A stretch of 64,000 nt of DNA from Macrostomum lignano. Lineage: Eukaryota. The notes below the pieces were generated by a model that was not told the origin of the DNA, made no database searches, and saw nothing but the letters and a program-made list of their open reading frames with translations. Positions 20,331 through 59,191 of the stretch are shown here, one piece after another. The first letter of the stretch is position 1, and the number at the start of each line of letters is the position of its first letter. The translations under genes and the position numbers were made by a program. The stretch covers positions 124,001 through 188,000 of the forward strand of contig NIVC01000452.1 in NCBI GenBank assembly GCA_002269645.1, read 5' to 3'.

Positions 20331-20368
20331 AGCCAGCGGAATGGGTGGAACTTTTGAGCGCTGGCTTT

Positions 20369-21088
<720 letters not shown>

Positions 21089-27251: not shown

Positions 27252-27287
<36 letters not shown>

Positions 27288-32388: not shown

Positions 32389-33371
32389 CGAGTTCTTTTT
32401 AGAATGCCTCTAAATACAATTTACACCATACATACTACTACTAAGTTTAAAGCTGTTTTAAGTAGTATTACTAGCGCATGGACGGCTTAAGTTTTGTTTT
32501 TTTTGCTTGTAGGCTTCTTAATGCTTAAAATTGCATTTTTGTGTTCGTTTTCAACTCGCTTGTCTTCCATTCTCTAGAAACGTGTACTTTTCCACGAAGT
32601 CAATATCACTCGCTGCATTTTCAATAGACAGTGTCCTAAAATTTGAGTCTTCCTATTATTCAATCCACTTCAATAAATAACTGACTTGTGTAAGCAACAA
32701 ATTTAACTATTTTAAACCCAGAAAATGTTTTAAAGTACCGCTACTCATTTTGCAAATTTTAATTTTTGACGTTTGGAATCTCTTATTACGGTAGGAACCA
32801 TATATATTTTGACACTTCAATACGATTCATTTAAGAGAAGAACGTTTTGTTTATATTGGTGCTTAGACACTGCAAAGAAGCTTTATTATGTTTGGTAACA
32901 TTTATTTAGCTTTTTTATTCGGTTAGTCTGTAATATTGAATGTTGTAACTACTGATTGAGGGCTATGAGTTAGAGGCTCATGTAAGAACCAAGACCACAG
33001 GCGGCTAGAGTAGAAAAGCCGTTACAGTCGCAGTTGATCGAATTTCGCTGGAGGCCATGAAGATTTTAGCACTAAACTCACATTATGAGTCTGAGTTGCA
33101 CTCGCAAGGTTTTCAGAGCTGTTTCTCTAATAATTCTTTTTTAATTTGTTTCCTCGACCAACTTGCATTGTGCAACGAAAATCGGCCTCCAGCGACATTT
33201 GCTAGTGCAGCGGAATTCTGCTTCAGCTGCCCATGTCTCTAGCTTGTACGATCGTATTATTATTAGTGGTGCCTGCGTTGAGGTAACGAAAGTCTTTATG
33301 GGGTTTCAAAAGTCTTTATGAAGTTTCAATACCTTTAATCACGTGACGGTCTCCAGTCACTGGCCAACTGT

Positions 33372-34042
33372 TTAGAAGGCCGGACCGTTGAGCTGGGACT
33401 CGATATGTTTCAGCTCCCGAGCCAGCTGGCACATGGTGCACGGGCCGCAAAAGTAGGAGCAGCAGCAGTCCTTAATAACGCTGCCCTCGATGTTGTACCG
33501 AGTGCGCAGCTTCAGTCGGTACATCATCAGAGTATCCGATACGCAGAACGGCGTGCAGCAGTGCTCGTTCATTCGTTTAGAGATGCTGCAGGTTAGGTAC
33601 CAGAAGCCGCAAAATAATGAGCAGACGCAGGAGGTGCAGTCCTCGAAGCAGCCGCAGGTGCCGGTGCTCCATTCCCTCTCTTGCTGCTTTCCTGCAGTGA
33701 TGTTCAGGTTGTTACATGTGATGATGTCTTTTGACGAGTGTGTAACCAAAACTAGGGACCCGACCCTAGAACTGGATTAAGGCTGGCAAGGCCCAGCCTC
33801 AGATAATTTAAACCTTATTTATCGTATTAAGAGTTGACATTCAATACTCGTATTTAGCCTTGTCCTTGTCCTTTTTCCAGAATTCACCTTAAAAGTCACT
33901 GCAGCCTGTGGCAATGTGTAGATAAAGAAACAGTAATAGCACTAAATTCAAATCACTTACCAATCGATACGGGCTGCCCGGTCTGCACAAAAGTCGCTTC
34001 CGGCTGGCTGGTCACCACGTACTGCACCTGTTGTTTCTGCAT
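33372..34042 (-). CDS. PLAC8/cornifelin-family Cys-rich protein, 2 exons, 133 aa, copy 1
   Basis: Exon 1 34042-33961 (MQKQQVQYVVTSQPEATFVQTGQPVSI, donor GTAAGT, phase 1) and exon 2 33691-33372. PLAC8 motifs WSTGTCGCFED, LRTRYNIEGS..KDCC and FCGPCTMCQLARELK. Confidence 0.93.
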
Positions 34043-34739
34043 ATCGAGCAGTTAGCTAGCGCGAGTCTACTCAAGTGAGCCGTGAAAGAAAAGCGCCTTA
34101 AAAATTTTAAGAGAACGTCATAAATGTAGAAATTCTTTCCTGGGCTGGGTGGGTGGTGGGCGCATCTCGCTGCGAGGCAGCCGCACCCTAATAGACAGCT
34201 GCACCCAAAAAGCTCGTCGTGACCTTTTTACCAACAGGCATTATTTGACAGTGTAAATTTAAGGGCAAGCAGCAGCAGCAGACAGACAAGAGGGCTCTGT
34301 TAAAGACTGTTCGAATGGCCTCTGCTTTTGAATTGTTTTTACGAGCGTAAAAGTAACCAAACATGCGACGTGCGCGCCTTACGTTAAGCCGTGGTTGCGC
34401 GCATTTCCTATTTTTTTCTACCCTGAGGCAGTAGCTGCAGACATCTACAATAACTATATGAGCTAGCAAAAATGATGTCATCTAATTTAGACAGCATACG
34501 TCGTGTAGTAGCTAGTCGCGGCGCTGTCTCTCTTTAACTCGCAATATTTTTAATTTCCAAGATTGCAGCCTTACATTGTGCTTTCACTATGGACAGCTCA
34601 GGCACTCCAATTTCACTGGAATTTCAAATTATTTGTCCAGTGGGTTAAGCGAGGGCTGCTTTAATGGTTCGTGGAAAAAGACACTTCAATAATTTATCTG
34701 CATACACCCACCTAATGAGACTTCTCAACATAGTTTCCA

Positions 34740-35000
34740 GACAGAGTCATACATTTCTTCATCCGATAAAAGCATGCTATATAAAACAGTCTCTTAATTT
34801 CACCTGAGTGACAGCTTCCAGCTCCTTGCGAGAATCAAAGCGCTTTCCTTTGAGCTTCTTCTTAATCCTCGGACAGAAGAAGTCAACAGGAGCGAGGTCG
34901 GGCGAGTAGGCTGGAGATATGGCAGCAGAGTCGATGCCAGATCCTCTTATCACCCTGGCTCGGTGAGCTGCATGGTGCGTTGTCATGGTGCAGGAAAATG
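34740..35000 (-). pseudogene. Mariner transposase C-terminal remnant, copy 1
   Basis: Frameshifted HHDNAP..H, PAYSPDLAPVDF, KKKLKGKRF and KCMTLSGNYVEK, matching the mariner D,D34D C-terminus. Confidence 0.85.
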
Positions 35001-35276
35001 GTACCTACGCGGTCTCTTGTTTTTGGCAAGGACCACTAGGAGCACTTTATTTCATGATTTTGTCGTATTATTACATGTAGGACTGTAGGTTATTAGTTTT
35101 TCTTACATTTACTTATGACTATAGGCTAGGCCTATATTCTTGTCAAGAAGCTGAAAATTGACATTAAAAAGGTTTCAACACATCCTCTGAAATGCCACTG
35201 AAAAAAACACGTAAAGTTTCACTTCATTTGCATAAAAGGAAGTTTTATTTTCCCATATAATATTTATAAGAATGAG

Positions 35277-35845
35277 CTATAAATTCTCAAGGACTACTAA
35301 AGTAGGACGGGAAACTACGTTTCTTAGAAAATGCTTATGAGGCTGGTTTTCGCGGAGAAGTACTCATTTATAGGAAGTTTCATTTTTCAGCGCAAAAATT
35401 GCTACTGCTTTCGATAGGAGGCAGGCAGACCCATTATTCATATTTTGATATGTTGTGCCTTCTTATAGGAATAGCTCTATTGGTATTCATAAAGTTTTTT
35501 GTTTAGAAAATTAGAATTACGAGTATATGTCAAATTCTTTTATTCTACGTAGTTCCTGTGCCTAAAATCATAATAACGCATGGCACAGCTCTGGTTTTAT
35601 GGATCTATTTTATCAGCTCTGTTACACATTGACACAATGGGCTAAGAAGTCTTATATCAATACAGCTATAAAAGATGAACATTGGATCTACCTGATCCTA
35701 TCGAAAGCAATAACAATTCTTTTTCTGAAATAACGAAAACTTCATATCTCCGCAGTGTATTTTTTCGGCGAAAACCTGCCTTTTAAACATTTTCTATGTA
35801 ACGTTTACTGTCCTACTCGAGTAGTCCTTGTAAATTCTATAGCGA
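35277..35845. mobile_element. MITE-like element with ~110-bp imperfect inverted ends; copy 2 at ~61086-61670
   Basis: Left gctataaattctcaaggactact..gtaggacgggaaac..tagaaaatg..ggctggttttcgc is mirrored by gcgaaaacctgcc..cattttcta..gtcctactcgagtagtccttgtaaattctatagc. Confidence 0.6.
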
Positions 35846-36631
35846 ATAGCGATCCAGCGCGCCAATTGAGTGACTTTGGGCACGTCATATCCCGGGTGAA
35901 AAGGCATTAAAAAATAAACAAGCTAACAAAAAATAACGAGAAGCATCCTCATCAATTGTGTAGTTTCTTTCCAACACTTTGATTTAATAATAGAACTCAT
36001 ATTCATATTTAGCGTAGAAAGTTATTCAAGTTTTACATTATACGTACTAGTCGGTGCGTGTTTTAATATAATCATTGCCACTTATAATGAATTCATGACT
36101 GTGAAAGGTGTGGCCGACAGCCAGAAACGACTCAACAGGTATAATAAACAATATTTTATGCTCAAAATTAGCAATTTTCAGACAAAAATCGAAAAGCTAA
36201 ATGGAATCTAATCTACGAGTAGCTCAACAAACCTGTCAAACCAGCAATACAGGGCCATTGAAAATACAAAAAGCACAAAGTACTCTTATTATAAAGAAGT
36301 TGCTTGATTCAAATTTGATCGTCAGAACAATTACTCGTAATTACGAGCGTATAATTGCACAGAGCCTTGAATTTCATCTGAATAGCAGTAGGTTAAACAT
36401 TCCAGAGTTTTTTTACATGTTGGAAATATTTTTGTAAGATTGAGTGATGGCATAAAAACCAATATTATATTTTTTTCGACACTGAATAAGAGCTTATCAA
36501 CAAGAAAGAATAATGTCATAATTCGAAAGGGATAATAAGAAAATGTGTATTAATAGCTAAATTAGAGTACTCACAAATTTATCCGTACTTCTAGGGGTTA
36601 AAACGGTGGTAAAGACCATGATTGCACACTG

Positions 36632-37065
36632 CACAGTCCTGGCCAAGGCCAACTAGCGGGTGTACATTGGGGCAGGGGATATAAGAGGGCCGTTGCACAG
36701 TCCTGGCCAACTAGTGGGTGTACATTGGGGCAGGGGATATAAGAGGGCCGTTGCACAGTCCTGGCCAACTAGTGGGTGTACATTGGGGCAGGGGATATAA
36801 GAGGGCCGTTGCACAGTCCTGGCCAACTAGTGGGTGTACATTGGGACAGGGGTTATAAGAGGGCCGTTGCACAGTCCTGGCCAACTAGTGGGTGTACATT
36901 GGGGCAGGGGTTATAAGAGGGCCGTTGCACAGTCCTGGCCAACTAGTGGGTGTACATTGGGGCAGGGGTTATAAAGAGGGCCGTTGCACAGTCCTGGCCA
37001 ACTAGTGGGTGTACATTGGGGCAGGGGTTATAAAGAGGGCCGTTGCACAGTCCTGGCCAACTAGC
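36632..37065. repeat. 58-59-bp minisatellite, ~7.5 copies
   Basis: Unit cacagtcctggccaactagtgggtgtacattggggcaggggatataagagggccgttg. Confidence 0.95.
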
Positions 37066-38088
37066 GCTGTGTACAAGCGTACACTAGGGTACTGGCTATA
37101 ATGTAGGCCGCTGCACACGGCGATAAATTTAAAGCAACTAATTAACAACAATGGAAGTTAAATTGATCATATAGGCTGGAACGATTATTTAAGAAAAGTA
37201 AATTAAATGAGCTCACATAACACAAATATTAATTAGTAAAATGAACGAATTTAACATTACTACAAGAAAACAACAATGCTTGAAAACAGATTTTGCTGAC
37301 GAAAAAATAAATGATCATTGACATGCAAAGTAAATATATATATATAAAGATATATATTTTTATATTATACTTTTTCACATGATAAGTTCATTTTATTCTC
37401 ACCTATAATCAAGACCAGAGCAGAATTACTAGCACATAATCAACCAATATAGTTTTGGTAATACGCGTACAAAAAGTTAAACCGGTTGAGAACAAAAAAA
37501 CAAAGAAACAAACAAATTATTATTTATTCGACGAGATCCCAGAAGGAAAACACACAATTAACTCACTCTAATAGTGGTAATATGTTTATTTATATATCAC
37601 CACTAATAAAAGTACAAACTTGTGATGTACTTTTAAGGAAACTAAGGGCCTTTTTTTACTTAAATATAAACTGGTCCACATGAATAGCGCTTAAATAATT
37701 ATTTAATCATTAGGTCATTAACGCATAACTACTCGTATATGCGCCACTCAGTGCAATTTCTTGTGTAAGCTACTTTCAACTCAGTAGAAAGTTAAGCATT
37801 TTAATGTATTTAAGAACAAGACTCCTCTAATTAGCCCTGTTTTATTGCCTTCCTCAGAGTTCCAGCCTTAAGCTGCCTGCCATGTACATTCTCAGCGGCG
37901 CTAGTTAATGTACATTAACGGCTGCGCCAATAGCAAGCCGTTTTCCGGCTGCACGTCGCTTCAACCGCCTTTCTTATTATAAAATAGCTTGCACATGCTT
38001 CCTTACTACTGCATTGAAAGTCATAGAAACTGCTAGGCCAAGCCAATATGCCTAACTGGCCCATCTAGCTATTAAACACTATCTGTGA

Positions 38089-41000
38089 TCAGTAGCGACC
38101 GCCGCCGCCGGTGAAAGCGGACCTGGCTGACGACGTGGCGGCATCGGCGGCCACCCCACGCACGGTCTCGTTAGAGAGAACGCCCTGGCTGAACTCTTGC
38201 TTGGCCTTGGCGAAGCTGGCCCCCGTGCTGCGGTAGATCCTGTGCACCTGTAAGCGCGATGATGATGCACTTGAAGCTGAGACGACACAAACAGACAGAT
38301 ACTGAGACAAACAGCACATAATGAGACACAAATAGACAGATACTGAGACACAAATGGACAGTATAAATTATTGTACGTAGTTTTCAATCGAAACAAGTTA
38401 ACACACGGTGCAGTAGCGTACACTCCAAGCTAAAACACGCTGAGTTGGCGGCTGGCACCCCCCATAGCTAGCTGGCAGTTTAGGCTCGGGTTCTGATCTT
38501 TGATGTGCATAGCCTCTAAGATATTCAAAGTGTGCTCATGGCGGCAAGAATCGATAATCTTAAATAAATCAATCGGTTTGCTGTTACAGCATGCAACTTA
38601 TATTGTGTATTCAACTTATTACAGGTATATTTATTCAACTGTTTATTAGAATTTTCAATCTCACTACTGCACTGACGATGATCTACAAGTGTCGAAATGC
38701 ATTGGCAAAATTTGAATTAAAGTAAATAAAAACAAGTTAATGTTTGTTCTCTCATTCATTTTATTCCTATTTATTAAGCGAGCTACTCTACCACAAACAG
38801 ACAGATACTGAGACACAAACAGACAGATACTGAGACACAAACAGACAGATACTGAGACACAAACAGACAGATACTGAGACACAAACAGACAGATACTGAG
38901 ACACAAACAGACAGATACTGAGACACAAACAGACAGATACTGAGACAAACAGACACATAATGAGACACAAACAGACAGATACAGAGACACAAACAGACAG
39001 ATACTGAGACAAACAGACACATAATGAGACACAAACAGACAGATACTGAGACACAAATGGACAGATACTGAGACACAAACAGACAGATACTGAGACACAA
39101 ACAGACAGATACTGAGACAAACAGACACATAATGAGACACAAACAGAAAGATACTGAGACACAAACAGACAGATACTGAGACAAACAGACACATAATGAG
39201 ACACAAACAGACAGATACTGAGACACAAATGGACAGATACTGAGACACAAACAGACACATAATGAGACACAAACAGACAGATACTGAGACACAAACAGAC
39301 AGATACTGAGACACAAACAGAAAGATACTGAGACACAAACAGACAGATACTGAGACACAAACAGACAGATACTGAGACACAAACAGACAGATACTGAGAC
39401 ACAAACAGACAGATACTGAGACACAAATGGACAGATACTGAGACACAAACAGACAGATACTGAGACACAAACAGACAGATACTGAGACACAAACAGACAG
39501 ATACTGAGACAAAACAGACAGATACTGAGACACAAACAGAAAGATACTGAGACACAAACAGACAGATACTGAGACACAAACAGACAGATACTGAGACACA
39601 AACAGAAAGATACTGAGACACAAACAGACAGATACTGAGACACAAACAGACAGATACTGAGACACAAACAGACAGATACTGAGACACAAACAGAAAGATA
39701 CTGAGACACAAACAGACAGATACTGAGACACAAACAGACAGATACTGAGACAAAACAGACAGATACTGAGACACAAACAGACAGATACTGAGACAAACAG
39801 ACACATACAAGGACACAAACAGAAAGACACAAAGTCGCACTAAAATATACAAGTCTAAAAAACAAAAACGCTCTAAAATTGATGCTAAGGCACGCACTAA
39901 TAATTTTAAAAAATACATCATACATTCAATTCACACTACTCACCCGAATAAGTAGTATCATGTCAAGCACAGACAGACAGGTGAAGCAGGCGGCGATGAA
40001 CAGCATGAACCCGGCGGCGCCAAGGTTAGATTTCAACATGCTGGTGCCGTTAATCCAGCCGCACGAGCCCAGATAGTTGAAGCCGAGGCACTGCACAACA
40101 AGGATGACGAACTGGACGAAGAACACCAGAAAGAACAGAAAGAAGTTGAAGCTGCTGTCGTTCCTGCAATTTGGTAGGGGAGTTGGATTTGGGATCTGGG
40201 AGTGTGCCTGTGAAACACTGAGGATCTGGGAGTGTGCCAGTGAATCACTGAGGATCTGGGAGTGTGCCTGTGAAACACTGAGGATCTGGGAGTGTGCCAG
40301 TGAATCACTGAGGATCTGGGAGTGTGCCTGTGAATCACTGAGGATCTGGGAGTGTGCCTGTGAATCACTGAGGATCTGGGAGTGTGCCTGTGAATCACTG
40401 AGGATCTGGGAGTGTGCCTGTGAAACACTGAGGATCTAGGAGTGTGCCAGTGAATCACTGAGGATCTGGGAGTGTGCCTGTGAATCACTGAGGATCTGGG
40501 AGTGTGCCAGTGAATCACTGAGGATCTGGGAGTGTGCCAGTGAATCACTGAGGATCTGGGAGTGTGCCTGTGAATCACTGAGGATCTGGGAGTGTGCCAG
40601 TGAATCACTGAGGATCTGGGAGTGTGCCAGTGAATCACTGAGGATCTGGGAGTGTGCCAGTGAATCACTGAGGATCTGGGAGTGTGCCTGTGAATCACTG
40701 AGGATCTGGGAGTGTGCCTGTGAATCACTGAGGATCCGGGAGTGTGCCAGTGAAACACTGAGGATCTGGGAGTGTGCCTGTGAATCACTGAGGATCTGGG
40801 AGTGTGCCTGTGAATCACTGAGGATCCGGGAGTGTGCCAGTGAATCACTGAGGATCCGGGATAATGCAGTGTACATGCAAGCACTCAATCAGCAAAGCCT
40901 CACTTGAACGCCTTGTACAGCGGGCGAAACCAGCAAATAAAGGAGCAGGGCGGCAGGATGACACACAGCAGCAGAGACACGCCAAACACGGCTCCAGCTG

Positions 41001-42139
41001 TTGAGGCGTCGGTGCTGGAAGCTTCAATAAAGTACGCCAGGGTGCCTAGGGTGTTGATTAGTAGTACAGCCACGTGCGCCATCCACAGGTAATAGCCCAG
41101 CCTCACAATCCGCCGAAACTCCTGAGGGATTTCCAATTCAAAGTCCTGATAGAAGCAGGGCCCGACAGGGCAGAATGACGGAAGCGGCGGCCAGTTGTTG
41201 TTGCGGTCTGGAAGCAGAAATTCAGGCATTGTGCATAAAGCTAACTGGTTGTTTTATTGGATTAAGGGGACAATCTACATCTACTGCTAAACTGGGGATC
41301 AGGGGGGGGGCAATCTACTGCTGGACTGGAGATCAAGGGGGCAATCTACTGCTGGACTGGGGATCAAGGGGGGCAATCTACTGCTGGACTGGAGATCAAG
41401 GGGGCAATCTACTGCTGGTCTGGGGATCAAGGGGGGGCAATCTACTGCTGGTCTGGGGATCAAGGGGAGGGGCAATCTACTGCTGGTCTGGGGATCAAGG
41501 GGGGGGGGCAATCTACTGCTGGACTGGGGATCAAGGAGGAGGGGCAATCTACTGCTGGACTGGGGATCAAGGAGGAGGGGCAATCTACTGCTGGACTGGG
41601 GATCAAGGAAGAGGGGCAATCTACTGCTGGACTGGGGATCAAGGGGGGGCAATCTACTGCTGGACTGGGGATCAAGGGGGGGCAATCTACTGCTGGACTG
41701 GGGATCGGGGGGGGGGCAATCTACTGCTGGACTGGGGATCAAGGGGGGGGCAATCTACTGCTGGACTGGGGATCAAGGGGGGATAGCGAAGGGTCAGAAG
41801 CAATTCTGAAAGAGACACAAAGTCAGTATTACATCCGCCAGAGCCACCGGCCTGCATTTCCTGTTCCCGTCGCCGTTGTTCCTCCTCGCGGCGCTCCAGC
41901 TCCCTGGCCTTGGCCTCCAGTTCTCGTTGGCGCCGTTCCAACTCCTCCGAAGTGACACGCTGCTGGGCGCTGGCACTGTAGGCAGGCGGCGGCTGCTGCT
42001 GCTGACTAGAAGGCAGCACAGCCGGCTGACTTGGCGGCTGCTGTTTGGCTGATTTGTCAAACGGATTGAATTCGTCTGTTGGTCGCTGGGCTGGCTGGCT
42101 GCCGCCACTGCCGCCGCGGGCTTGCTGAACTGATGCATC
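38089..42139 (-). CDS. SCAMP: Secretory carrier membrane protein (SCAMP), exons 2-5; own first exon not found
   Basis: Exons 42139-41833 ([32 protein letters not shown]), 41207-40904 ([23 protein letters not shown]), 40163-39944 ([12 protein letters not shown]) and 38247-38089 ([19 protein letters not shown]) splice in frame. No in-frame ATG directly upstream of 42139. Confidence 0.95.
38795..39830. repeat. 22-bp minisatellite, ~47 copies (SCAMP last intron)
   Basis: Unit gatactgagacacaaacagaca; a few more units at 38280-38365. Source of the 380-aa C/L/S/V ORFs. Confidence 0.97.
40193..40860. repeat. 30-bp minisatellite, ~22 copies (SCAMP intron)
   Basis: Unit gagtgtgcc(a/t)gtgaatcactgaggatctgg. 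Confidence 0.97.
41290..41781. repeat. ~31-34-bp G-rich minisatellite, ~15 copies (SCAMP intron)
   Basis: Unit ggcaatctactgctggactggggatcaa plus a variable G-run. Confidence 0.95.
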
Positions 42140-44646
42140 CTGGTTGGTTTGGATACGAGTCTTGGTTTACAACAGTTATAAATGACTATAATATTTAGCC
42201 ATAAATAAAGAGTTTTCTCTATTTAGGCATGTGATTGATTTCAGAAAAAGCTCAACCGATCCTCATGAAACAGGCACCATTCAATTGGAAAATTTTCTAG
42301 CAATGGTACATGTGATGTGGCTAAGAAATTGCTCAATGCTAAAGGGATTAAATACTTGAAAAATATGCTTTTAGCAAAGGTCAAGCATACTTTTTGACTT
42401 GAAATGAATTTTAAATAGTATATTTTAATATAGCACAATCAGGACACAGTTGGCAGCTATTCTCCTTTTGGCTAAGACCTAGAAAAGTTCAAGGCAAGAC
42501 AAAGTGTATTTTAGCCAAAATATATAGGCCTGCCCTCTCTGCCCTCCCCTTGTATCTTCACCTCTAGAATCTGCCTTTTTTAATAAATCTTTTGCTGCAA
42601 AGCAAAAACAAATTAAGTTGCTTTCAGCTGTCATGATGAGCTACTCAGATATATGGGCTTATGGTATCAGTTTGATCAATAGTTCCCTAGTCTCAGCTCC
42701 TTGGACTGGCTAGCCATGGTTAACAGGTTAAAAAGAATCCAAAAGTTAATATTCAAGACTTTTCCTGCTTTGTGGAACTTGGAAGAATAACAGTGAACAA
42801 AATTTCAAATAAGGAATTGCACTTTTGAAGTGTTTCTGCTGCTTGGCTTCCCTATGCGCCCTTTCTAAAGAAAACAAGCTTATAGGCTTTTTAACAAGGG
42901 CATAGAAAGCTTTTGCTACAAGTATAAGATGAAAGATAAGACATGGGTATACCTAAACAGCTTTGGTATAAACAAGGGCATAGCTAGGAATTTTTTAGGG
43001 TGTTGATTTTTACTCCTAGGTTCTGAACTTCTGCTTAGAAAGTTAAATACACTATCAATTTTCACTTTTTGCATAAATATTCTATGCCAAACTGCACCAG
43101 CATGGTAGACTGTGCCTGTATTGCTAGGGGCCAATCTATGCTAGATACTATCTACAATAAGGGCCATTTGCTGCAATAGGGTCATCAACCATATTTAGCA
43201 ACTGCAATAAAATTTGAGAAGCTACTTTGTAGTATGTAAGAAGTCTTGATAAAGATAGCTTAAAAATAATTGTTTAACAACTTATTGACCAATACTAAGC
43301 TAGAATCAGCTATCCTATAGAATGTTTGTTAAATTAATTTTTGCTTGATTCAACCCCAACAAGTGAACAAACTAACAATTAATATATGCTAGCAACTAAA
43401 TTGTTTGTTATATCTCTGTAGGTGGCACAATCCAACTTAAAACTACTAGTTGACTAGCCATCTAGAGAAAAATATTCTAAAATAAAAAAAGTAAACGATA
43501 GCTTGAGTTGAATACCAGTATTAGCAGCTTAGTAGCTAATTTTTCAATTTCAAATACATCTCTTTTTAAAGGTCCCCTTTTATTATCACAGCCTTTTGAC
43601 CATAGACATGTTTTCATGCTTTATACATGCAAAACTGATATTATTTCAAGAATTCCTAATATATCAATGCAAAAATTCTAATTGAATAGAGATATATTGT
43701 AGATAAAATTACCTAGTCATATTATTACTTTATGGTAAAGTAGTAGGAGCCTAACCTTATATTTAATTATGGCAATTGACTATAACAAATAATTTATTTA
43801 TTAGTACATGATAAACTGTTACTTTGTTTACTTTTTTATATTTTTAGACTTTAAAAAGGAAAAGAATCAAATTCAAGCAAAAAGTTAATGATTATTGAAT
43901 GCTTCTATAAGATCTAAAAAGCCAACTGTGTAGTCTCCCTTAATACAATCAGTGTTGGGCACCATTAGTAAAAATCTTAACTTCCATTAATGGCAAGAGC
44001 ATTAATGTTAAAAAAATATTAACTTATCAACTTTTAACTTCATTAAGTTAACTGAAAGTTAACTGATAATTGTTAATTTTAATTTGTTAAAGTTAACACA
44101 AAAATATAGAAACCTTGCACATTTTTATAATACACTGTCTTTGCTTTCCCCTTTTTAGCAAAACATAGAGGTCATCTAAGGGATTTACAAGCTAAAAAGT
44201 AATAAATAATAATTTAAAAAAACTTGTTTATATAATACTACTAAATTAAGCATATATGATATAATTAAAGTAGTAACTTTTTTATTTGAAACTCATTTGA
44301 AAACTCATCTATAATGTTGCAACTTTTTTAAACTTATATTTTTGTTTTTTCTTTGCATCTTTGGTCATTGACATTTCCATTAGGCCTAACATTAATGATG
44401 AATTTGTTATTAACTCACAGAGTTATTAATGCAAATTTGTTAGTAAATTTGTTTAAAAATCTTAATGGTAGTCCATTAACATTAGGCCCTAATGAAAAAT
44501 CTTAACACTTATTAATGCTTATTAGGCCCTATAGTGACCATAAGGGCATAAGGCATAAGGAAAATTTTGAACAAAAAATAAACTTCTACTAGACGTACTT
44601 CTATTTGCTCGACTATATTGCTCTGCATACAAATGTTAATACTTAC

Positions 44647-44757
44647 AGTTATGATAATGCAGCCAACAAAAGTGCCCATTCGATTATCAAAGCAAAAACA
44701 CTTTTTTAATGGTAAAATAGGCTCTACATCATCTCTCTTCCGTAGTTTCCAGCCCAT
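44647..44757 (-). CDS. Orphaned duplicate of LAPTM-like exon 1 (37 codons)
   Basis: Same peptide MGWKLRKRDDVEPILPLKKCFCFDNRMGTFVGCIIIT with an intact ATG and ACT|GTAAGT donor. Its own downstream exons were not duplicated. Confidence 0.85.
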
Positions 44758-47478
44758 ATTTGCAAACTAACGTGATACAAATCAATAAGGGGTAATAAGA
44801 AATATTTAAAATACACCCCAATACAACATGGACAACAGTATGTAATAATGTAGAAATAAAATATTATTTCTTCCTCAACGAGCTTCTTTAAAATGCTACG
44901 AAAATATTTGCCAATATTAGTCGTTTTGTAAAAAATTTACGTTTAGAAACATAATTTTATTGCTTTAAACGAGCAATTATAGGCATTTGAAAAGCCTTAG
45001 AAGACAAAGAAAATAAAATTGATATACTGCTTTAAAAATCTTTGCACGCAAATTTGAATATTTTCGGCAAGCTGGCTTTTTAAAACGCGCTGTATATTAT
45101 AATAGCTCCATGATGACTGACAGGGACTTCGCACGATCGGCCCTTTGATTCATCTCAGTTTATATACCATTTCAGTTGATTCAGGTGAACAGTGAAGCTG
45201 GGCGGGCTAAACCGATAGTTTTACTGGCTTAAATAAGGCAAGTAGCTCAATTTTTAACGTATAATATCTTCATATTTTCTGTGTGTAGTGTACTAACTTT
45301 AGCAAGTGAATTATTTTATTTTGAACTAAAAAAAAATAATAATATACTGCATGTAATTAATACTTAAAAAAAATTGATGCTAGCATCTACCAATGACAAT
45401 ATCCAGAGGCATACATATATAATTTTCTTAGTTTAGGCCTATAATAGCTAGATAAGGGAAGGCCTATAATAAATAGGCCTAATTTGGCTAAGCCTTTTTA
45501 GGCTTTTAATTGATAGGCCTAGCCTAAGCATTGTTTAACTAGGCTAAGGCCTAAAATCGTTTTTTAAAGCATCAATTTAAGTTTCCACATTTTGGTAAAA
45601 ACTGTAGGGGCCTAAGCTATTAAAATAGGCCTAGTACAATAGAAAGGTTATAAAGTAAGAAATTAAAAATATATATACTATATATATATGTTAGATTGGC
45701 CCTATTCCATAATTATTAGGCCTATAGTATTGACTTAAAAGCCTTGCCATTAGTTTAGAATATTGTATTATAAACCTTAATTTAACAAGGCAAATTAATA
45801 AAAAAAGTTAAGTAATTTTTAAAATCAATCGTTTAAGTAATCAATAGACTTTTTAATAGTTATATTAAATAAGTTAAGGGTTTTTCTTTGCTAGGGTTTA
45901 GAAACAATTTTTATATAGTTATTTCTAGAATGTTAGGGTTTTTTATAGCATTTTTATTAGTTGATTAAGTTGAAATTTGTTTTGCAACTAACAAAATATA
46001 GGCTAAGACCAATGTCAATTTTTATGTATCTTCTTTTTTAATAATATTAAAAAAGGGACTAAGCATATCTTAGAGCACTTTAAGCAACATTGTTATATAA
46101 TCAATGAGAGGCATCATTGCCTATAATATTTTCTAAATCTTTTAAGTAGACACTAAGCACATAGACATACATGTGCAACTACTGGCCAACCTGACTGATC
46201 TGGCCATGGTAAATTGTGGTAAACTAGGGATAAGTTATAAAAATACCTACCTAAAAGAATACAGACATAGTACTAATTAGATGACAAGGCTTTTCAAGCT
46301 TTTACCCTTATAGGACAATGATAGTTACTCCTGCCATTTATCCAAAATTTCTTCAAGCTGCATTTTTTGGTCAAAAAGTAAGTTGCATGGCCAGTATAAA
46401 TTGGGTGGGTTGCGCACATATGCACATGGATATGTATAGTCATATGCATAGGCACATATGTCACATATATAAGTGTGCAATAGCCATATTTTTTGTCAAA
46501 CATGTATATTTGAACATGCCTTGGGGATTGGCCCTCAATGGCATTAACTGAAAAAATAGCCCCATGTAAAGATTCTAATTTAGTTCCAAATTTATGTGAT
46601 AATATTTATATTTAGATTAAGTCTAGACTACTATGCCTTGGCACATAATAGTGCCAACCTTAGACCATTAGTTATTGCCCTTAATATTTTTTGTTCTTTT
46701 ATTTTATGTCATTTAATTTTTTACTATAATGTATTTATTGTTTAAAATTAAATTTCCAGATGCTACAATCAATTTCTAAAAGCTATGAGCTTATTTTTCA
46801 GCTGCTTCATATGCCATCCCATGCTAGAGGCAAGCAGGTGAGCATCGGTAAATTTAGTAAATTTATATAGTTGTAGGCTGCTGTTATGTACATTTTTTAT
46901 ATTTTCTTTTACTTTTGTTTCAGGAGAAAGAATTTATTGTTAGATTTTTATGCAGCATTGACAAGCTTTTATTTGGTAACAAGTCATCTTTGGAATCTCT
47001 TGCTGATACTATACAGCATACCTCTCTTAGGAATGGACAAACTTTGTTTAGGTAAGATTTTTTGTATTAGAATTATCAATTGGTTGGTGCTCTAATTATG
47101 TTTTGCTTACTTTATAAAAAAAATTGTAGTTGCACATATGCATTTGAAGTGCTTATGACTCTATTCTAGCAGTGTAATTAAATAATTAGTTCTATAAAAT
47201 ACCACTATTTATAATATTGCATCTTTCTTTTACCATTCCAGTTCTGGCAGTCGCATCACTAGCTGGTACATTTTATTGTCTGGCTCTGTCTATGTTGATG
47301 GGAAGCTTCATCATCCAATAAAAAGGTAAATTCTTGATTTAAGCTTTTTGTGTAGAATGTCCCAAACTTTAAGGAACCTTTTGCCACAGACATTACAGAA
47401 TCTACTACACAAGTGTATTCCTTACTCGTATAGGGGATTATACGAGTAATATATATAAATTTTGGTTCATGTGTTGAA

Positions 47479-47755
47479 GCGGAGCAGCTTAGTGGAAAAT
47501 ACATGTACATCCGACTTTCATGCCGCGACCCCTGGTTCGATTCCATGCGCGGCCGCAGTCATTTGGAGCTTGTGTGTACGAAATTTGGCCAGGGGTTGTC
47601 GTGCGATTCACAGCCATGAGGGCCGACCCCCATGGCACAGAGAGTGTACATGCCTGACGATTAGACAGTCAGGACCGCTGTACACCCTGTGTGAGCGGGT
47701 GTGTGTAAGTGCTGTGTCTGCGTACAGTATTGGCGCGCTTGTATTGTGCTCAGGA
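47479..47755 (+). mobile_element. tRNA-derived SINE-like element, copy 2; minus-strand partner at 49287-49439
   Basis: Duplicate of 20055-20330 and 22083-22238. Confidence 0.58.
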
Positions 47756-47934
47756 GCCAGCGGAATGGGTGGAACTTTTGAGCGCTGGCTTTGGGACGGG
47801 ACGCTTTCACTAGGCCGAAATTTCACTTCGCCGAAATGACTAGCACGCTCTTTCATGAGGCCGAAACTTCAGTGGGCCGAAAAATCATTTTAGCAGCATC
47901 CTTACTATGCTCAAAAATGGATGTAAACTTGGAC

Positions 47935-48016
<82 letters not shown>
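47935..48016. repeat. (GATA)n microsatellite, ~20 units
   Basis: Paralog of 20512-20876, much shorter. Confidence 0.99.
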
Positions 48017-48017
<1 letters not shown>

Positions 48018-49890
48018 AGATAGATAGGAGCGTAGGGCCAATTTACAGTTTTAAATGTTACGCTACTGTGAAATCGGCTGCTAGTCTGGATGGTACATTT
48101 AGACTCAATCAAGTTAATTAAATTAATTTTGTTAGTCTTGGCCTAGTGAAAGAGGCTGCTTAAATGATTTTTCGGCAAAGTGAAGTTTCGGCCTAGAGAA
48201 AGACGATACTAAAATAATTTTTCGGCAAAGTCAAGTTTCGGCCTTGTGAAGGAAGATGCTTTCGGCAAAGTTAAACCCCCCTTTAGGACGATGTTGCCGG
48301 TATACTTGTCAATCTATTTTTATTTTGAAAACACACGAGCCAGTAATAATGATCATTATTACGGTCTCTGACTGTTCTTTGGGCTGCCTTACTGGCGGCG
48401 TTTCTCGGGTTGTGCGCAATCCAATTGAGTTGCCCAGTCGGGCGCTCAGTTCTAATGTGGCCTCATCTGAGGTGACGTCCACTCCAAAATAAACTTCTTA
48501 TCTGCCCTGCCTTGGTCTTAGGAGGGTGTACCTGGAGTAATTGTGACTCTGGACTGCAGTGTGGCTAGAACGGGACTTGAGCCCCCGGTCGCATCCGCCC
48601 AGCAGGAAAGGCGACCATTCACAAAAGTGTACGGTAGAGCCCAGTTGATGCCAGCTCTGAAGCTGAGCCTCCAAAATGTAACTGGTGATCCTCCTCCATT
48701 TGTTTTTATCCCCTCTTTTTTATTGGTTTTATCTTGTTCATGAGCCAACCCAAAATTAGGAGTAGATCTCTGCATTTTGGTCCATCTGCTCCCTCAGTCC
48801 ACCTGCTGTCACCTCTGGTTGTCTCCCTGCTTATTATGTCTCGGCTCTCATCACCGGCTCTCATCTCAGTCGGGGAGAACCGGCTGAGCCCGGTGTCCTC
48901 TTGCTCTGGAGTGCTCTTTTTCCTGTTCCTTGGCTTGGGCTATTTGAGTTGGGTAGCGAAGTAAGCCTTGAGGCCTGCAGCCTATAGGAGGACTTTCGGA
49001 GCTTTTTCCTACCTGATAGGAGACTCGCTCTTGGTGAAATAAGCTGCCCAAACTCTCCAATCTGAAAGCTTTTTCCGCTGACTGGGTGCCTGGGTGCCTT
49101 GTAACAGGTACAAACAATGCCCGGGCCCCGGGGTATAGCTAGGGTCCCGCTCTCGGACCAGCTTTCCAAAATTTTTCCAAAATCCATCCACCTGATTCTA
49201 CTCAGGTGGAGGCGAGCCTAGCTCTCCACCCCGATTAACAACACAACAATAATAATCATAATTCCTGCCCACAGGATAGTTGCTGCGGGTTCGGCCCTCA
49301 TATGTGTAAATCGCACGGAACCCCCCCCCCGGCCAATTTTCTTGTACAAGCCTCAAATGATTGCGCACTGAATCGAGCCAGGGGCCTGTGGCGCAACAGT
49401 CAGACACATTTACCGCTGAGCTGCCTTGCCAGCTGCGCTTTGACCACAGACAGCAGAGCTATAGCTGTAGTTACACGTACCGTGCAGGTCTTCGCGTGCG
49501 CTAGAAGCAGTTCCAAATTTATTACAAAGGTCTATGTCGACTGCTTATTTATTCTGTTTATAGCAACCTGTCGGTTCTATGCAAAAAACGAAGCAGTTTA
49601 ATAATATGACAGTCGCTGTTTTGCTAATAAGCTTGAGCCCTGGCACGTATCCAAACATTTAAGCATTGAATTTTATGCACTCATTCGATCTCTGGACAAA
49701 ATAGGAAGAGCTCCTGACAATACAATTTAAATTGTATTGGCCATGAGTGTGGCTATCCATACGAGGAACTTTATATAATGTATGTGTGTTTAAAGCATTT
49801 GCCTGCTGCACTGTATTTATTCTCTAAACTAGAGTAATATATAGCTTGTACATGTTACATATGCAGCGCAAGTATTCATTCGCCTTATAG

Positions 49891-52800
49891 ATTTGGGTTG
49901 CACTATTGTGCTAGGAGAGCTTTAAGCGCTCTCTCTCTCGCTACTGTGCAACGGGTGGTTAGTGCGCCAATCTGGCACAGAGAATTAATAATATTCAGTG
50001 AGGCACTGTATCGGTTAGGCAGTTTAAGCTGTGGGTAGAAACGGAGATCAACAATCATGTATATTCACAGACGGGGTGCATATATTGCTATTAGCTAGTT
50101 TCAGGAGCTAAATCCTCAGTGTAGATCTATACATGTTAGCAATTTTTGTGTTTTCTCTTCTTGTTTTCATAAAAAAATTGTCAGCCTTGGCCGACCAATC
50201 AGCGAAGAGGATCGTTACTATAGTAGCGATTGTTATTGCCTGGAGCAGTGCGACTTTCTTGTTGTAAGTCTGGGAACTTTTTTATTAATTATTAATTTTG
50301 TTCGGTCGTTTGCACTAAACAAACGGAAATATTAAGTCCTCAGCTGACTTGCCTCATTTAAACCTAATTAGCATATTCCTGTGCCACTCTGTGTCAAGTG
50401 GCACAGGTAAAAGCATTTATATTTGCACTTGCACTACGCAATCATTAATTATCTAGTTCTGGAATATCTAGATTAGCGAATTAAGGACTGCAGTTAATTT
50501 AGACTCGATCTCGATTTCCGTCAAGGGAGTCGGGACTGCAGTTAATAGAGACGCTATGGGGGTCAGGGGAGTCGGGACTGCAGTTAATAGAGACCCTATT
50601 TGTGTCAGGGGAGTCAGGACTGCAGTTAATAGAGACCCTATTTGTGTCAGGGGAGTCAGGACTGCAGTCAGTGGAGGCTCCATGGACGTCCTTAATCGCG
50701 CCTTCAGATCTAAAAAATGTCGTGCGAGAGAAATTGGAAGAATATAAAAATAGCTTTTCATAGTTTCAGCCGCAATTTCTGTTTATAAAATATTGACGCA
50801 ACTGTACATGGCTTAAGTCGCAGATTCCACGCGAACTGTGTACATCCTGTCCAGCTTATTGCATTTTTAATGATTTAGTGAAGTTCGTTTTCAAATATAT
50901 CTAGCTGTGTCCGAAAGCATCTATACACTTTGTATATGAAGTGGCTAGCTAAAGAAATTTATCTAATCTTTAAAACTTACAATTATTCTACTATTATAGA
51001 TTGACCTGAAAACAGCGTGCCAACAATCGAGCCAGTTGTCGAGCATGGACTCGAGTATCACCCTAGGCCTTGCTGAGGACAGTGTCAGGCTGGTAAGATT
51101 ACTGGTGTACAATTTGACTTTATTTTTAGTTCTGTTATTGCAGTCACATAGCCTGTGTATCTATCAAGAACTGGTGAACCTTCTTGCTAGCTGGGTTAAG
51201 CTTGTTCTTTAAACTCTCAAAATGAGGTGCTGCCTCTGCAACTCATCAGCGATTCCCCTCTACTGATCAAGAATCGCCCCTCTACTGATCAAGAATCGTC
51301 CCTCTACTGATCAAGAATCGCCCCTCTACTGATCAAGAATCGCCCCTCTACTGATCAAGAACCGAAATTTGCAATCATTAGCCCTTGGCTCGCGTTGGTT
51401 TCAGCAGCAGCGCAGCTCCCTGGACCTGTCGGACGAGGCCTCGTCGTCGACCTACTCGGACAGCTGCTGCGAGCTGGAGGACAGTGACAATGACTTCTGC
51501 GATGCGTCGGCGGAGACGGGTGCATCCTTCGGCGTCACCGCCCGCAGCTCGTTGCTGTTAGCTCTGGCCAAGCCGCCGGGCCAGCGATCGCCCAGCGAAG
51601 TCGAGCTGCTGCACCAGGCCACTCGCTGCATGCCGGCGTTTGCCAATTTCAACGAAACTGTCCAACGCCGACTGTCGGCCGGCCTGGCCCTGGCCTCGCT
51701 GGATCAACTTTCCGTGCCGTCAAACTCCTGGTCAGTGATCCTGGACGGCCTGGTCGAATTGACGACGCCCACCATGTCTGACGGTGAAGCTGACGCGGTG
51801 CACCGTCGGCTAGGCCCAGGCGACTGCTTGGACGCTAGGCTGCTGGCCGGCGAGGCTCGCGCTGTCGGCCCCAACTGCCGGCTGGCCTACCTGGCCTTGG
51901 ACGATTACCTGGCCGCCGTGGAGACGGCTGGCGCGGACGAGGCCGACGGCCGTGCGGTGCTGCGCAAGAATGGACAGGTGGGAATAGTTCAATGGTGTTT
52001 TTAACATCCCAGCTCCTCAGTCATTAACCGCCACCCTCCCAGATCCTCAGTCATTAACCGCCACCCTCTCAGATCTTCAGTAATTAACCGCCACTCTCCC
52101 AGATCCTCAGTCATTAACCGCCACTCTCCCAGATCCTCAGTCATTAACCGCCACCCTCCCAGATCCTCAGTCATTAACCGCCACCCTCCCAGATCCTCAG
52201 TCATTAACCGCCACCCTCTCAGATCTTCAGTAATTAACCGCCACTCTCCCAGATCCTCAGTCATTAACCGCCACCCTCCCAGATCCTCAGTCATTACCTC
52301 CCAGATCCTCAGTCATTACCTCCCAGATCCTCAGTCATTACCTCCCAGATCCTCAGTCATTAACCGCCACCCTCCCAGATTCTCAGTCATTAGTCAAATA
52401 TGCTTAAACTGCAGTCTTAAGCGTTTAGTCGCAGTTCCCTGATTGTCTTGTTAAAACGAATTGTGAATATTGTGATGTACTTCTGTACATACGAAGTAAC
52501 TACATCAACAAGCCCTATCCGCCGGCCCAGGTCGTGCTGGTCAAGGAGGCCGACCCAAGCCGGGATGGCGTGCTCTGCGTGACCAGCGGCACTCCGGCTG
52601 CCCTCCTCGACGAGCTGCTTTCAACAAGCGCCGCCAACGTCGATGCGAGCTTCGCCGACGACCTCTTGCTGACGCGTCTAGCCTTTGTCAGCGACCTGGC
52701 CCTGGCCGACCGGCTGCTGCTGGCGCTGGCCGACCCGCCACAGCCAGACTGCGCGCCCAGCGCCGCATGGGAGCGAGCCGAACGTGTCCTACTCCAATGG

Positions 52801-58208: not shown

Positions 58209-59191
58209 CGAGTTCTTTTTAGAATGCCTCTAAATACAATTTACACCATACATACTACTACTAAGTTTAAAGCTGTTTTAAGTAGTATTACTAGCGCATG
58301 GACGGCTTAAGTTTTGTTTTTTTTGCTTGTAGGCTTCTTAATGCTTAAAATTGCATTTTTGTGTTCGTTTTCAACTCGCTTGTCTTCCATTCTCTAGAAA
58401 CGTGTACTTTTCCACGAAGTCAATATCACTCGCTGCATTTTCAATAGACAGTGTCCTAAAATTTGAGTCTTCCTATTATTCAATCCACTTCAATAAATAA
58501 CTGACTTGTGTAAGCAACAAATTTAACTATTTTAAACCCAGAAAATGTTTTAAAGTACCGCTACTCATTTTGCAAATTTTAATTTTTGACGTTTGGAATC
58601 TCTTATTACGGTAGGAACCATATATATTTTGACACTTCAATACGATTCATTTAAGAGAAGAACGTTTTGTTTATATTGGTGCTTAGACACTGCAAAGAAG
58701 CTTTATTATGTTTGGTAACATTTATTTAGCTTTTTTATTCGGTTAGTCTGTAATATTGAATGTTGTAACTACTGATTGAGGGCTATGAGTTAGAGGCTCA
58801 TGTAAGAACCAAGACCACAGGCGGCTAGAGTAGAAAAGCCGTTACAGTCGCAGTTGATCGAATTTCGCTGGAGGCCATGAAGATTTTAGCACTAAACTCA
58901 CATTATGAGTCTGAGTTGCACTCGCAAGGTTTTCAGAGCTGTTTCTCTAATAATTCTTTTTTAATTTGTTTCCTCGACCAACTTGCATTGTGCAACGAAA
59001 ATCGGCCTCCAGCGACATTTGCTAGTGCAGCGGAATTCTGCTTCAGCTGCCCATGTCTCTAGCTTGTACGATCGTATTATTATTAGTGGTGCCTGCGTTG
59101 AGGTAACGAAAGTCTTTATGGGGTTTCAAAAGTCTTTATGAAGTTTCAATACCTTTAATCACGTGACGGTCTCCAGTCACTGGCCAACTGT

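Follow-up and report, generated by a model that had tools for sequence, protein, structure and literature searches.

The architecture of a locus in the Macrostomum lignano Mlig_3_7 assembly supports a putative fusion gene born at the junction of a tandem duplication. At this junction, the first exon and candidate promoter of an uncharacterised membrane-protein gene with four predicted transmembrane (TM) segments (BOX15_Mlig005690, hereafter the 4-TM gene) lie upstream of the body of a SCAMP gene. We judge, with about even confidence, that a real ~27.5-kb duplication is present on one haplovariant and that a cis-spliced 4-TM/SCAMP fusion is predicted from it. As far as can be judged from sequence, a young putative fusion gene, formed through a well-known mechanism, is a plausible description of the locus.

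Structure of the duplicated locus

The window that we analysed is a stretch of 64,000 nucleotides (record positions 124001-188000 of contig NIVC01000452.1) with zero Ns. A 27,547-bp unit (16978-44524) is repeated head-to-tail from 44532. Window positions ~16975-38120 and 44529-64000 were 93-99% identical, and L002, the sequence that carries copy 2 past the window edge, was 100% identical to 53969-64000. The breakpoints are located inside two different genes of the same strand: intron 1 of the 4-TM gene (16978/44532) and intron 1 of SCAMP (44524, 743 nt after exon 1). The sister contig NIVC01002080.1 keeps the ancestral arrangement: a single unit (30.9 kb) separates SCAMP from the 4-TM gene, and the sequence runs unbroken through both breakpoint positions. 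The window gave no matches in an Rfam scan, and the papers and supplements searched for Mlig002484, Mlig025447, Mlig005690 and Mlig011891 made no mention of them. Feature coordinates are listed in Table 1.

Table 1. Features of the duplicated locus, in window coordinates
Feature	Coordinates	Strand	Description
Copy 1 of the duplicated 27,547-bp unit	16978..44524	.	4-TM promoter region and exon 1, RasGEF/cNMP gene, PLAC8 gene, SCAMP exons 2-5 and part of intron 1
Copy 2 of the duplicated unit	44532..64000	.	extends beyond the window to extrapolated ~72544; native SCAMP exon 1 comes after 743 nt of intron
Parental 4-TM gene, intact	13327..17203	-	exons 17203-17093, 14696-14481, 14371-14255, 14160-14104, 13515-13327
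Duplicated intergenic/putative promoter region (copy 2)	44758..46923	-	separates 4-TM exon 1 from the RasGEF/cNMP-binding gene, which is transcribed divergently
Duplicated 4-TM exon 1 (copy 2)	44647..44757	-	111 nt, ATG, 37 codons MGWKLRKRDDVEPILPLKKCFCFDNRMGTFVGCIIIT, phase 0, donor GTAAGT at 44646-44641
First 115 nt of 4-TM intron 1, 5′ part of hybrid intron	44532..44646	-	three-way alignment with 17066-16886 and L001
Junction filler TAGGGCC, 7 nt	44525..44531	-	with next 4 nt forms the 11-mer TAGGGCCTAAT; three-way alignment with 17066-16886 and L001
Probable template of junction filler	44481..44491	-	TAGGGCCTAAT, in SCAMP intron 1, 40 nt downstream of junction
3′ 2385 nt of native SCAMP intron 1, 3′ part of hybrid intron	42140..44524	-	99.5% to L001 10801-13185
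SCAMP exon 2 (copy 1), first SCAMP exon present	41833..42139	-	phase 0; DASVQQ..DEFNPF..coiled-coil
SCAMP exon 3 (copy 1)	40904..41207	-	NNWPPLP motif, TM1-TM2
SCAMP exon 4 (copy 1)	39944..40163	-	TM3-TM4
SCAMP exon 5 (copy 1)	38089..38247	-	stop codon 38089-38091

Junction sequence and haplovariant mosaic

On the minus strand, 4-TM intron sequence runs to 44532 and is followed by a 7-nt filler (44531-44525; record 168525-168531 of NIVC01000452.1) and, from 44524, by ancestral SCAMP intron 1. The junction alignment agreed to the base with the 44531/44532 position given in the first-pass annotation. The 11-mer TAGGGCCTAAT occurs at the junction and at 44481-44491 only (expected 0.04; two matches were reached in 0 of 100 shuffles). 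The joint combines a 7-nt insert copied from nearby with 4-nt microhomology, the pattern of alt-EJ or template-switch insertion; read from the sequence, a joint of this kind is what polymerase-theta-type or template-switch repair leaves behind. An 11-mer confined to the junction and a site 40 nt away is not what an overlap assembler or a random ligation chimera would yield.

This evidence bears on a different explanation, in which the junction came from one or very few long reads (a somatic or low-frequency rearrangement among the pooled worms, or an aberrant molecule) and Canu threaded two haplovariants of a single-copy locus head-to-tail, leaving no stable allele or gene. A cellular repair signature argues against it, and the junction alignment showed that the two joined introns share no similarity from which a false overlap might arise. 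A library ligation chimera would be very unlikely to bring together two directly oriented pieces of one 28-kb stretch (roughly 1e-4 to 1e-5 if fragments from the 764-Mb assembly joined at random). Private SNPs were found in each copy (~9 in 3.4 kb in copy 2 and 14 in 1.6 kb in copy 1), indicating that the same reads were not simply used twice.

However, the mosaic structure of the contig is in keeping with such an error. The best match of copy 1 (99.9-100%, substitution level) changes along its length: N2080 (NIVC01002080.1) for 39-44.5 kb, copy 2 for 31-35 kb and N1710 (NIVC01001710.1) for 17-18 kb. Around the junction, the N2080-type block covers just ~9 kb (about 35.8-45.4 kb), with haplovariant switches on either side, and agrees with the unduplicated sister contig at 57 of 60 and 14 of 18 informative sites. 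The block is about as long as one to a few PacBio reads, so the junction may be thinly supported or the allele rare. The N2080 haplovariant also exists in unduplicated form, the unit occurs four times in the assembly where three subgenomes are expected, and copy 1 SCAMP has no gene model (see below). Chimerism and "expanded haplovariants" are known errors of Mlig_3_7, in which subgenome-chimeric scaffolds make up 36% of the length (PMC10733133), and the assembly, of a hexaploid-like line, was made with a Canu errorRate of 0.04 (PMC5730564), a further point in favour of this explanation. On balance, we regard an assembly or rare-molecule origin as rather unlikely. Under the favoured reading, the junction would be present in worms at appreciable frequency.

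The donor gene

All introns of the parental 4-TM gene are in phase 0, and its 229-aa product is an exact match to PAA82769.1. The duplicated exon 1 was as the first-pass annotation had described it (44757-44647, with ATG, GTAAGT and phase 0). It differs from the copy 1 exon (17203-17093) by one synonymous base, and its donor context is ACT/GTAAGT. The whole divergent intergenic region, comprising 2.2 kb of DNA upstream of 4-TM exon 1, is present in duplicate; the alignment of 44758-46923 with 17204-19499 showed 29 substitutions and one indel of 130 bp. This duplicated region probably acts as a promoter.

The donor had been labelled LAPTM-like, a label that failed Pfam and profile tests. The 4-TM protein matched no Pfam family, Mtp (PF03821) included, even at E<=10, and a Pfam search of 10 of its distant relatives gave no match. 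When it was compared with LAPTM4A by hhalign, the probability was 3.4%, and a 25-column N-terminal motif alone was aligned. A profile search of 1.84 billion proteins and PDB likewise gave no support for LAPTM identity. Like LAPTM4/5, the protein is predicted to have four TM segments, and in both, C-x-C..R-x-GT comes after a basic stretch near the N-terminus, at matching positions (hhalign columns 7-31); unlike LAPTM4/5, its family has SWYG and WRLP motifs of its own, and it has just 30 members among the 1.84 billion representatives. By these searches, the 4-TM protein is not a demonstrable LAPTM.

The SCAMP body and its missing first exon

The SCAMP acceptor at 42139 reads ..aaccag/GATGCATCA and is in phase 0. 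GenBank proteins P0001 and P0127, annotated on two contigs, splice native exon 1 exactly to this site (..NPFM/DASVQQ..), which bears out the acceptor and phase proposed earlier. An alternative acceptor, also in phase 0, is located 15 nt downstream. The copy 1 SCAMP body is 100% identical to PAA61001.1.

No SCAMP exon 1 was detected in 42140-44531 or anywhere in the window by tblastn with the true exon 1 peptide and three paralogous N-termini, or by a six-frame NPF scan; the statement that 42140-44531 holds no SCAMP first exon is thus upheld by the empty tblastn search with the true peptide. Native exon 1 (MSTFDNPFAEPSSDSNPFM) is found 743 nt past the breakpoint on the unduplicated contig. Its counterpart lies beyond 64000 with copy 2, where it had been predicted to lie, at L002 10001-10057 (extrapolated window position ~73443), and SCAMP copy 2 is the intact PAA82772.1 of NIVC01000452.1. 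ML2 protein P0002, which has an odd N-terminus and was considered as a candidate for crossing the junction, was uninformative: its position is in the right flank, 7 kb upstream of native exon 1.

NPF motifs bind EH-domain proteins. Native M. lignano SCAMP (P0001, P0127) has three of them, like SCAMP1, and the junction copy keeps the third alone (DEFNPF, exon 2). The first-pass annotation had drawn attention to a missing NPF exon; the exon with two NPF motifs is indeed absent, but the first SCAMP exon present (42139-41833) still has DEFNPF. In other respects the protein resembles the SCAMP family (PF04144), with a complete domain, the NNWPPLP motif, four TM segments and a coiled-coil. Unlike mammalian SCAMP1-3, which have N-terminal NPF repeats, the junction copy is without the exon for the first two NPF motifs and has a predicted foreign N-terminus of 37 aa.

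The predicted fusion gene

The duplicated 4-TM exon 1 sits 2507 nt upstream of SCAMP exon 2 on the same strand, matching the earlier estimate of ~2.5 kb. The hybrid intron between them is 2507 nt long, of which 2385 nt, including the 3′ end, are native SCAMP intron 1. The in-frame chimera that had been claimed was recovered: the spliced ORF is open over 1101 nt (366 aa), with GT-AG at all introns. Against SCAMP PF04144, the chimeric ORF scored 193.4 bits (cut-off 27; E=4.7e-57) over residues 143-322, covering profile positions 2-172 of 172. The predicted splice junction is ..ATCATAACT/GATGCATCAG.., the native SCAMP equivalent of which is CCATTCATG/GATGCATCAG. Phase 0 on both the donor and the acceptor leads to the predicted 366-aa product; however, a phase match has a 1 in 3 prior by chance, so the in-frame join alone is not remarkable. 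The locus unites the features of a tandem-duplication chimera, i.e. the promoter region and 5′ exon of one gene upstream of the 3′ exons of another, phases 0/0 and an open frame.

We propose the following course of events. A ~27.5-kb head-to-tail segmental duplication would have arisen by non-homologous end joining on one haplovariant of the M. lignano DV1 genome, with one break in intron 1 of BOX15_Mlig005690 and the other 743 nt into intron 1 of the same-strand SCAMP. The joint would have gained its 7-nt insert, copied from 40 nt away, together with the 4-nt microhomology. Both parents are intact on NIVC01000452.1 (PAA82769.1 for 4-TM and PAA82772.1 for SCAMP copy 2), and would have been kept whole at the outer ends of the duplication, while the duplicated 4-TM promoter and exon 1 would have been placed in front of SCAMP exons 2-5, at a distance of 2.5 kb. 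We expect this promoter copy to fire and to drive transcription into the SCAMP copy, and the consensus GTAAGT donor to be cis-spliced to the native SCAMP exon 2 acceptor, both in phase 0. In the 366-aa SCAMP product, the first 19 residues (with two of the three NPF motifs) would be swapped for 37 residues that form a basic, Cys-rich tail and half a TM helix, and this protein may be active. Of the Cys/hydrophobic N-terminus described earlier, the hydrophobic part amounts to just one half of TM1, and no membrane-spanning segment is predicted there.

The copy 1 SCAMP CDS is 100% identical to the functional gene of the unduplicated sister contig, which fits the description of the gene as newborn. 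The exact chimera was absent from a collection of 15 billion proteins, in which M. lignano RNA-seq assemblies are seemingly not represented, so that this absence is weak evidence. No protein of the collection that shares the 37-aa exon 1 peptide runs on into SCAMP, and the RNA-seq-guided GenBank annotation has no CDS or protein model of any kind on copy 1 SCAMP. The reading of the locus as a fusion gene thus stands as regards its architecture, duplicated promoter region, phases and predicted native exon 1, but it has no counterpart in the protein collection or among the gene models.

Spliced-leader trans-splicing as a possible alternative route of expression

A truncated SCAMP copy in M. lignano could also be expressed without the 4-TM exon. 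Under this explanation the duplication is real, and copy 1 SCAMP is expressed, if at all, via spliced-leader (SL) trans-splicing and not as a fusion, or else is silent. The 35-nt M. lignano SL (CGGTCTCTTACTGCGAAGACTCAATTTATTGCATG) has AUG at its 3′ end (..TTGCATG) (PMC8629364), which would make any phase-0 internal acceptor a ready-made translation start. The acceptors at 42139 and +15 are both in phase 0, and addition of the SL AUG at either would provide an in-frame start for a SCAMP of ~325-330 aa that is without the first two NPF motifs. The predicted junction is TTATTGCATG/GATGCATCAG (..TTGCATG at 42139) or TTATTGCATG/CAAGCCCGC (+15 acceptor). Depending on the study, 21-39% of M. lignano genes are trans-spliced (PMC8629364; PMC5730564). 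In Schistosoma mansoni, 28% of trans-spliced mRNAs had the SL AUG in frame, and >40 cDNAs required it, according to the account of Cheng et al. 2006 in PMC9851317. As in the slORFs of that account, an SL ending in AUG is found together with an acceptor (42139) in frame with the downstream ORF, and the SL AUG joined to the phase-0 SCAMP exon 2 acceptor would complete the ORF.

The +15 acceptor GTTCAG is close to the trans-acceptor motif [T/C]TNCAG; however, the AACCAG context at 42139 is unlike YTNCAG. Trans-splicing is favoured at acceptors that lack an upstream cis donor (Conrad 1993, as related in PMC8629364), whereas here, unlike in slORFs, transcripts from the duplicated promoter would have a consensus GTAAGT upstream of an acceptor whose context is atypical for trans-splicing. 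A protein beginning M+DASVQQ.. was missing from the searched protein collection. ML2 models that start at DASVQQ (P0128, P0130) were considered as SL evidence and set aside, since models of the ML2 annotation often begin at exon boundaries (P0129 at SCAMP exon 3; P0134 at 4-TM exon 2). Expression by trans-splicing in place of the fusion, or a silent copy, seems unlikely to us. We consider it highly improbable that the one truncated copy gives rise to a promoter-swapped chimera and also to an SL-initiated isoform depleted of NPF motifs, which would make it a very young, possibly segregating partial duplicate born translatable in two ways. If this were true, the early fate of partial duplicates would be directly testable in a transgenic-capable flatworm.

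Discussion

Duplication that captures a promoter and first exon is a textbook route to new genes, and similar tandem-duplication chimeras have been described in D. melanogaster and C. elegans. Tandem duplications that break within genes often yield expressed chimeras: in D. yakuba, 76 chimeras from tandem duplications were found in 15 lines, 24 of them with increased expression (Rogers et al. 2017, PMC5460883). The locus that we interpret as a putative 4-TM/SCAMP fusion is like the D. yakuba chimeras in being a direct tandem duplication with same-strand genic breakpoints, in which the 5′ end and promoter region of one gene are joined to the 3′ body of the other. The parents are likewise retained at the flanks, phase-compatible introns keep the frame, and the event looks young or polymorphic. 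Unlike in the D. yakuba cases, the junction is read from a chimeric assembly of a neopolyploid host, which has three haplovariant subgenomes, and SL trans-splicing gives a truncated copy a second possible route of expression.

If the junction is not real, the locus is another documented assembly expansion. It carries a practical warning in that local duplications of Mlig_3_7 sit in haplovariant-mosaic contigs, and "new genes" proposed from structure need read-level confirmation. If the junction and its transcript are real, this would be a cleanly resolved, very young chimeric gene, with its parents and the ancestral allele in one assembly and a repair scar at base level, in a regenerative flatworm for which transgenesis and RNAi are available.

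Tandem duplication and its junction

Self-comparison of the window, which contains no Ns, revealed a head-to-tail duplication (44529-64000 against ~16975-38120, 93-99% identity). The joint was placed by three-way alignment of the joint itself, the left edge of copy 1 (the first copy of the 27,547-bp unit) and the unduplicated SCAMP intron of the sister contig, NIVC01002080.1. This alignment upheld, at base resolution, the first-pass annotation's 44531/44532 joint of a SCAMP intron to intron 1 of a donor gene encoding a four-transmembrane (4-TM) protein. No similarity between the two joined introns that might make a false overlap was found at the joint. Within the 64 kb, TAGGGCCTAAT, which is the filler with the four bases that come after it, had two matches: one is the joint, and the other lies 40 nt beyond it in the same orientation (expected matches, 0.04; two reached in 0 of 100 shuffles). 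Because TAGGGCCTAAT was found only at these two places, the joint is read as a templated insertion with microhomology, a signature of cellular repair.

Coordinates of features in the window
Feature	Position	Strand	Details
4-TM gene intron 1 end at joint	down to 44532	minus	three-way alignment
Filler TAGGGCC (7 nt)	44531-44525	minus	three-way alignment
SCAMP intron 1 restart	from 44524	minus	three-way alignment
Duplicated 4-TM exon 1	44757-44647	minus	ATG, 37 codons, phase 0, donor ACT/GTAAGT
SCAMP exon, copy 1	42139-41833	minus	GT-AG introns throughout
SCAMP exon, copy 1	41207-40904	minus	GT-AG introns throughout
SCAMP exon, copy 1	40163-39944	minus	GT-AG introns throughout
SCAMP exon, copy 1	38247-38089	minus	GT-AG introns throughout
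Copy 1 segment match	39-44.5 kb		NIVC01002080.1, 99.8-100% identity (substitutions)
Copy 1 segment match	31-35 kb		copy 2, 99.9-100% identity (substitutions)
Copy 1 segment match	17-18 kb		NIVC01001710.1, 100% identity (substitutions)
Minisatellite array	736-1971		period ~62 nt
Minisatellite array	2975-3783		period ~45 nt
Minisatellite array	13595-14051		period ~24 nt
Minisatellite array	20512-20887		period ~8 nt
Minisatellite array	29399-31095		period ~14/42 nt
Minisatellite array	38792-39827		period ~22 nt
Minisatellite array	40192-40861		period ~30 nt

The unit holds a complete RasGEF/cNMP-binding gene (19500-~30800 and ~46924-58208, plus strand), annotated as 1048 aa in both copies; the duplication therefore doubled at least this gene too. 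It also holds a small PLAC8 gene (59192-59863, minus strand, 133 aa), confirmed for copy 2 only. Minisatellite arrays were very dense in introns and intergenic DNA, and the 30-nt array recurred in inverted orientation (~80% match) at 52004-52391.

Haplovariant composition of the contig

NIVC01002080.1 had the same gene order, a SCAMP-to-4-TM distance of 30.9 kb, equivalent to one unit, and both breakpoints uninterrupted; the third contig, NIVC01001710.1, was also continuous through the 4-TM intron breakpoint. Three haplovariant subgenomes (S, L1 and L2), ~1.4-2.4% apart, coexist in the M. lignano line DV1, S/L-chimeric scaffolds make up 36% of Mlig_3_7 length, and haplovariant expansion or collapse is a recognised assembly error (PMC10733133). 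In our judgement, the Canu errorRate of 0.04 used for Mlig_3_7 (PMC5730564) would make merging of haplovariants a few percent apart possible. Copy 1 was a mosaic at the substitution level, and private SNPs were present in both copies. Site-by-site comparison revealed that a NIVC01002080.1-type block crosses the junction, from ~35.8-37 kb to ~45.4 kb. Of its informative sites, 57 of the 60 that lie in copy 1 and 14 of the 18 in copy 2 agree with NIVC01002080.1; outside this block the duplicated contig switches relatives. On our reading, the contig around the junction is a haplovariant mosaic, and the junction itself probably reflects a genuine rearrangement of recent origin on the NIVC01002080.1-type haplovariant.

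A perfect inverted repeat was present at 4126-5201 and 5439-6514 (1076 nt, 100%, spacer 237 nt). This ~2.4-kb structure was missing from NIVC01002080.1, where the alignment passes directly from 6592 to 4123. Either a foldback-type element or a palindrome artefact of long-read sequencing may explain it.

Native SCAMP exon 1 and the spliced leader

The annotated models P0001 (NIVC01002080.1) and P0127 (copy 2) both read MSTFDNPFAEPSSDSNPFM/DASVQQ.. (slash, splice site), so the native exon 1 comprises 19 codons, ends in phase 0 and is spliced exactly to the 42139 acceptor, whose phase had been called correctly. Its donor is ATG/GTAAGT, and the breakpoint falls 743 nt into the native intron, which is 3128 nt long. 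The exon-1 peptide had no match anywhere in the 64-kb window, in agreement with the proposed lack of a SCAMP first exon in 42140-44531. As anticipated, native exon 1 lay beyond 64000 adjoining copy 2, at 10001-10057 of L002, an overlapping stretch of the same contig (extrapolated window coordinate ~73443). Over 10,032 bp, L002 (NIVC01000452.1, assembly Mlig_3_7, GCA_002269645.1) matches 53969-64000 at 100.000% identity, which places the window at 124001-188000 of that record.

A rival to the fusion, particular to M. lignano, is spliced-leader (SL) addition at the SCAMP acceptor, which would donate an in-frame AUG to the truncated copy, since the acceptor is phase 0 and the 35-nt M. lignano SL ends in ..TTGCATG; 21-39% of M. 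lignano genes are trans-spliced (PMC8629364, PMC5730564). An in-frame SL AUG is documented in Schistosoma, according to the account of Cheng et al. 2006 in PMC9851317. Two points speak against this rival: AACCAG at the SCAMP acceptor does not fit the trans-acceptor motif [T/C]TNCAG, and a cis donor upstream of the acceptor disfavours trans-splicing.

Model P0002 uses an alternative exon-2 acceptor 15 nt downstream (42139-42125, minus; cagttcag/CAA), and in P0128 and P0002 the exon-2 donor is shifted 15 nt upstream (~41848-41833, minus; ..EMQA/D..); both alternatives keep the frame. A ~33-nt minisatellite in SCAMP intron 2 showed large length polymorphism: ~3.8 kb in copy 2 (L002 13638-17457) versus ~0.5 kb in copy 1 (41279-41782), and ~0.5 kb on the sister contig.

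The donor 4-TM gene

The parental gene (17203-13327) has five exons, with every intron in phase 0, and its 229-aa product is identical to PAA82769.1. The first-pass annotation had called it LAPTM-like. No Pfam family matched it even at E<=10, and hhalign gave 3.4% probability against a hand-entered human LAPTM4A sequence, aligning only the N-terminal motif KR..C.C..R.GT common to both proteins. The resemblance is thus at motif level and does not demonstrate relationship, and the name uncharacterised 4-TM gene is used. A word-seeded search found only six relatives and a profile search 30 among 1.84 billion representatives; none of ten relatives scanned had a Pfam family. This small, unannotated 4-TM family, with neither a Pfam family nor a solved relative, has the invariant motifs C-x-C-F-D-x-R-M-G-T-F, F-W-K-G-F, S-W-Y-G-L-A and W-R-L-P.

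On NIVC01001710.1, a ~10-kb insertion in intron 1 (12048-22134 of its locus L003; window ~15154) stretches the gene model to 14 kb. Models P0121, P0122 and P0133 of the older ML2 assembly join the gene to a downstream same-strand Got1/Sft2-like gene (~8110-17203, minus), a hint that the two are transcribed by read-through or as one operon-like unit. Operon-like units in M. lignano are resolved by SL trans-splicing.

Predicted chimeric gene

The duplicated 4-TM exon 1 differed from the parental exon (17203-17093) by a single synonymous base, and was copied together with the 2.2-kb intergenic stretch reaching the divergently transcribed RasGEF gene. The SCAMP exons were 100% identical to M. lignano PAA61001.1. 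Predicted splicing of exon 1 to 42139 gave a 1101-nt open frame of 366 aa in which the SCAMP domain is complete (E=4.7e-57), in line with the in-frame fusion originally proposed. Native SCAMP intron accounts for 2385 of the 2507 nt of the hybrid intron, its 3′ end included. Since most of the intron is native, the acceptor is validated and a consensus donor lies upstream, the predicted splicing should occur. The proposed new Cys/hydrophobic N-terminus held in part: the 37 foreign residues comprise the cytosolic tail and half of TM1; no membrane span is predicted for them, because their maximum 19-residue hydropathy is 0.96 versus 2.06 in the intact protein.

Neither the exact chimera nor an M+DASVQQ.. 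version was present in a 15-billion-protein collection, and the protein search found no protein in which the 37-aa peptide runs on into SCAMP; this is weak evidence, as the collection seemingly lacks M. lignano RNA-seq assemblies. Annotation places no protein at all on the SCAMP of copy 1, since every 100%-identical match belongs to another locus. In D. yakuba, expression was raised in 24 of 76 tandem-duplication chimeras (PMC5460883).

The original observation was confirmed. Its fusion-gene interpretation is supported in part: for the junction architecture, the open frame and the location of native exon 1; the LAPTM-like label finds no support, and the hydrophobic N-terminus amounts to half of TM1. 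Judged from its sequence, the locus is a new case of a familiar class: a putative chimeric gene at the joint of a tandem duplication, whose two parental genes are retained. It sits inside an assembly known to be chimeric, and it is an unusually clean case: a single assembly preserves the ancestral allele together with a base-level scar, and coding divergence from that allele is zero.
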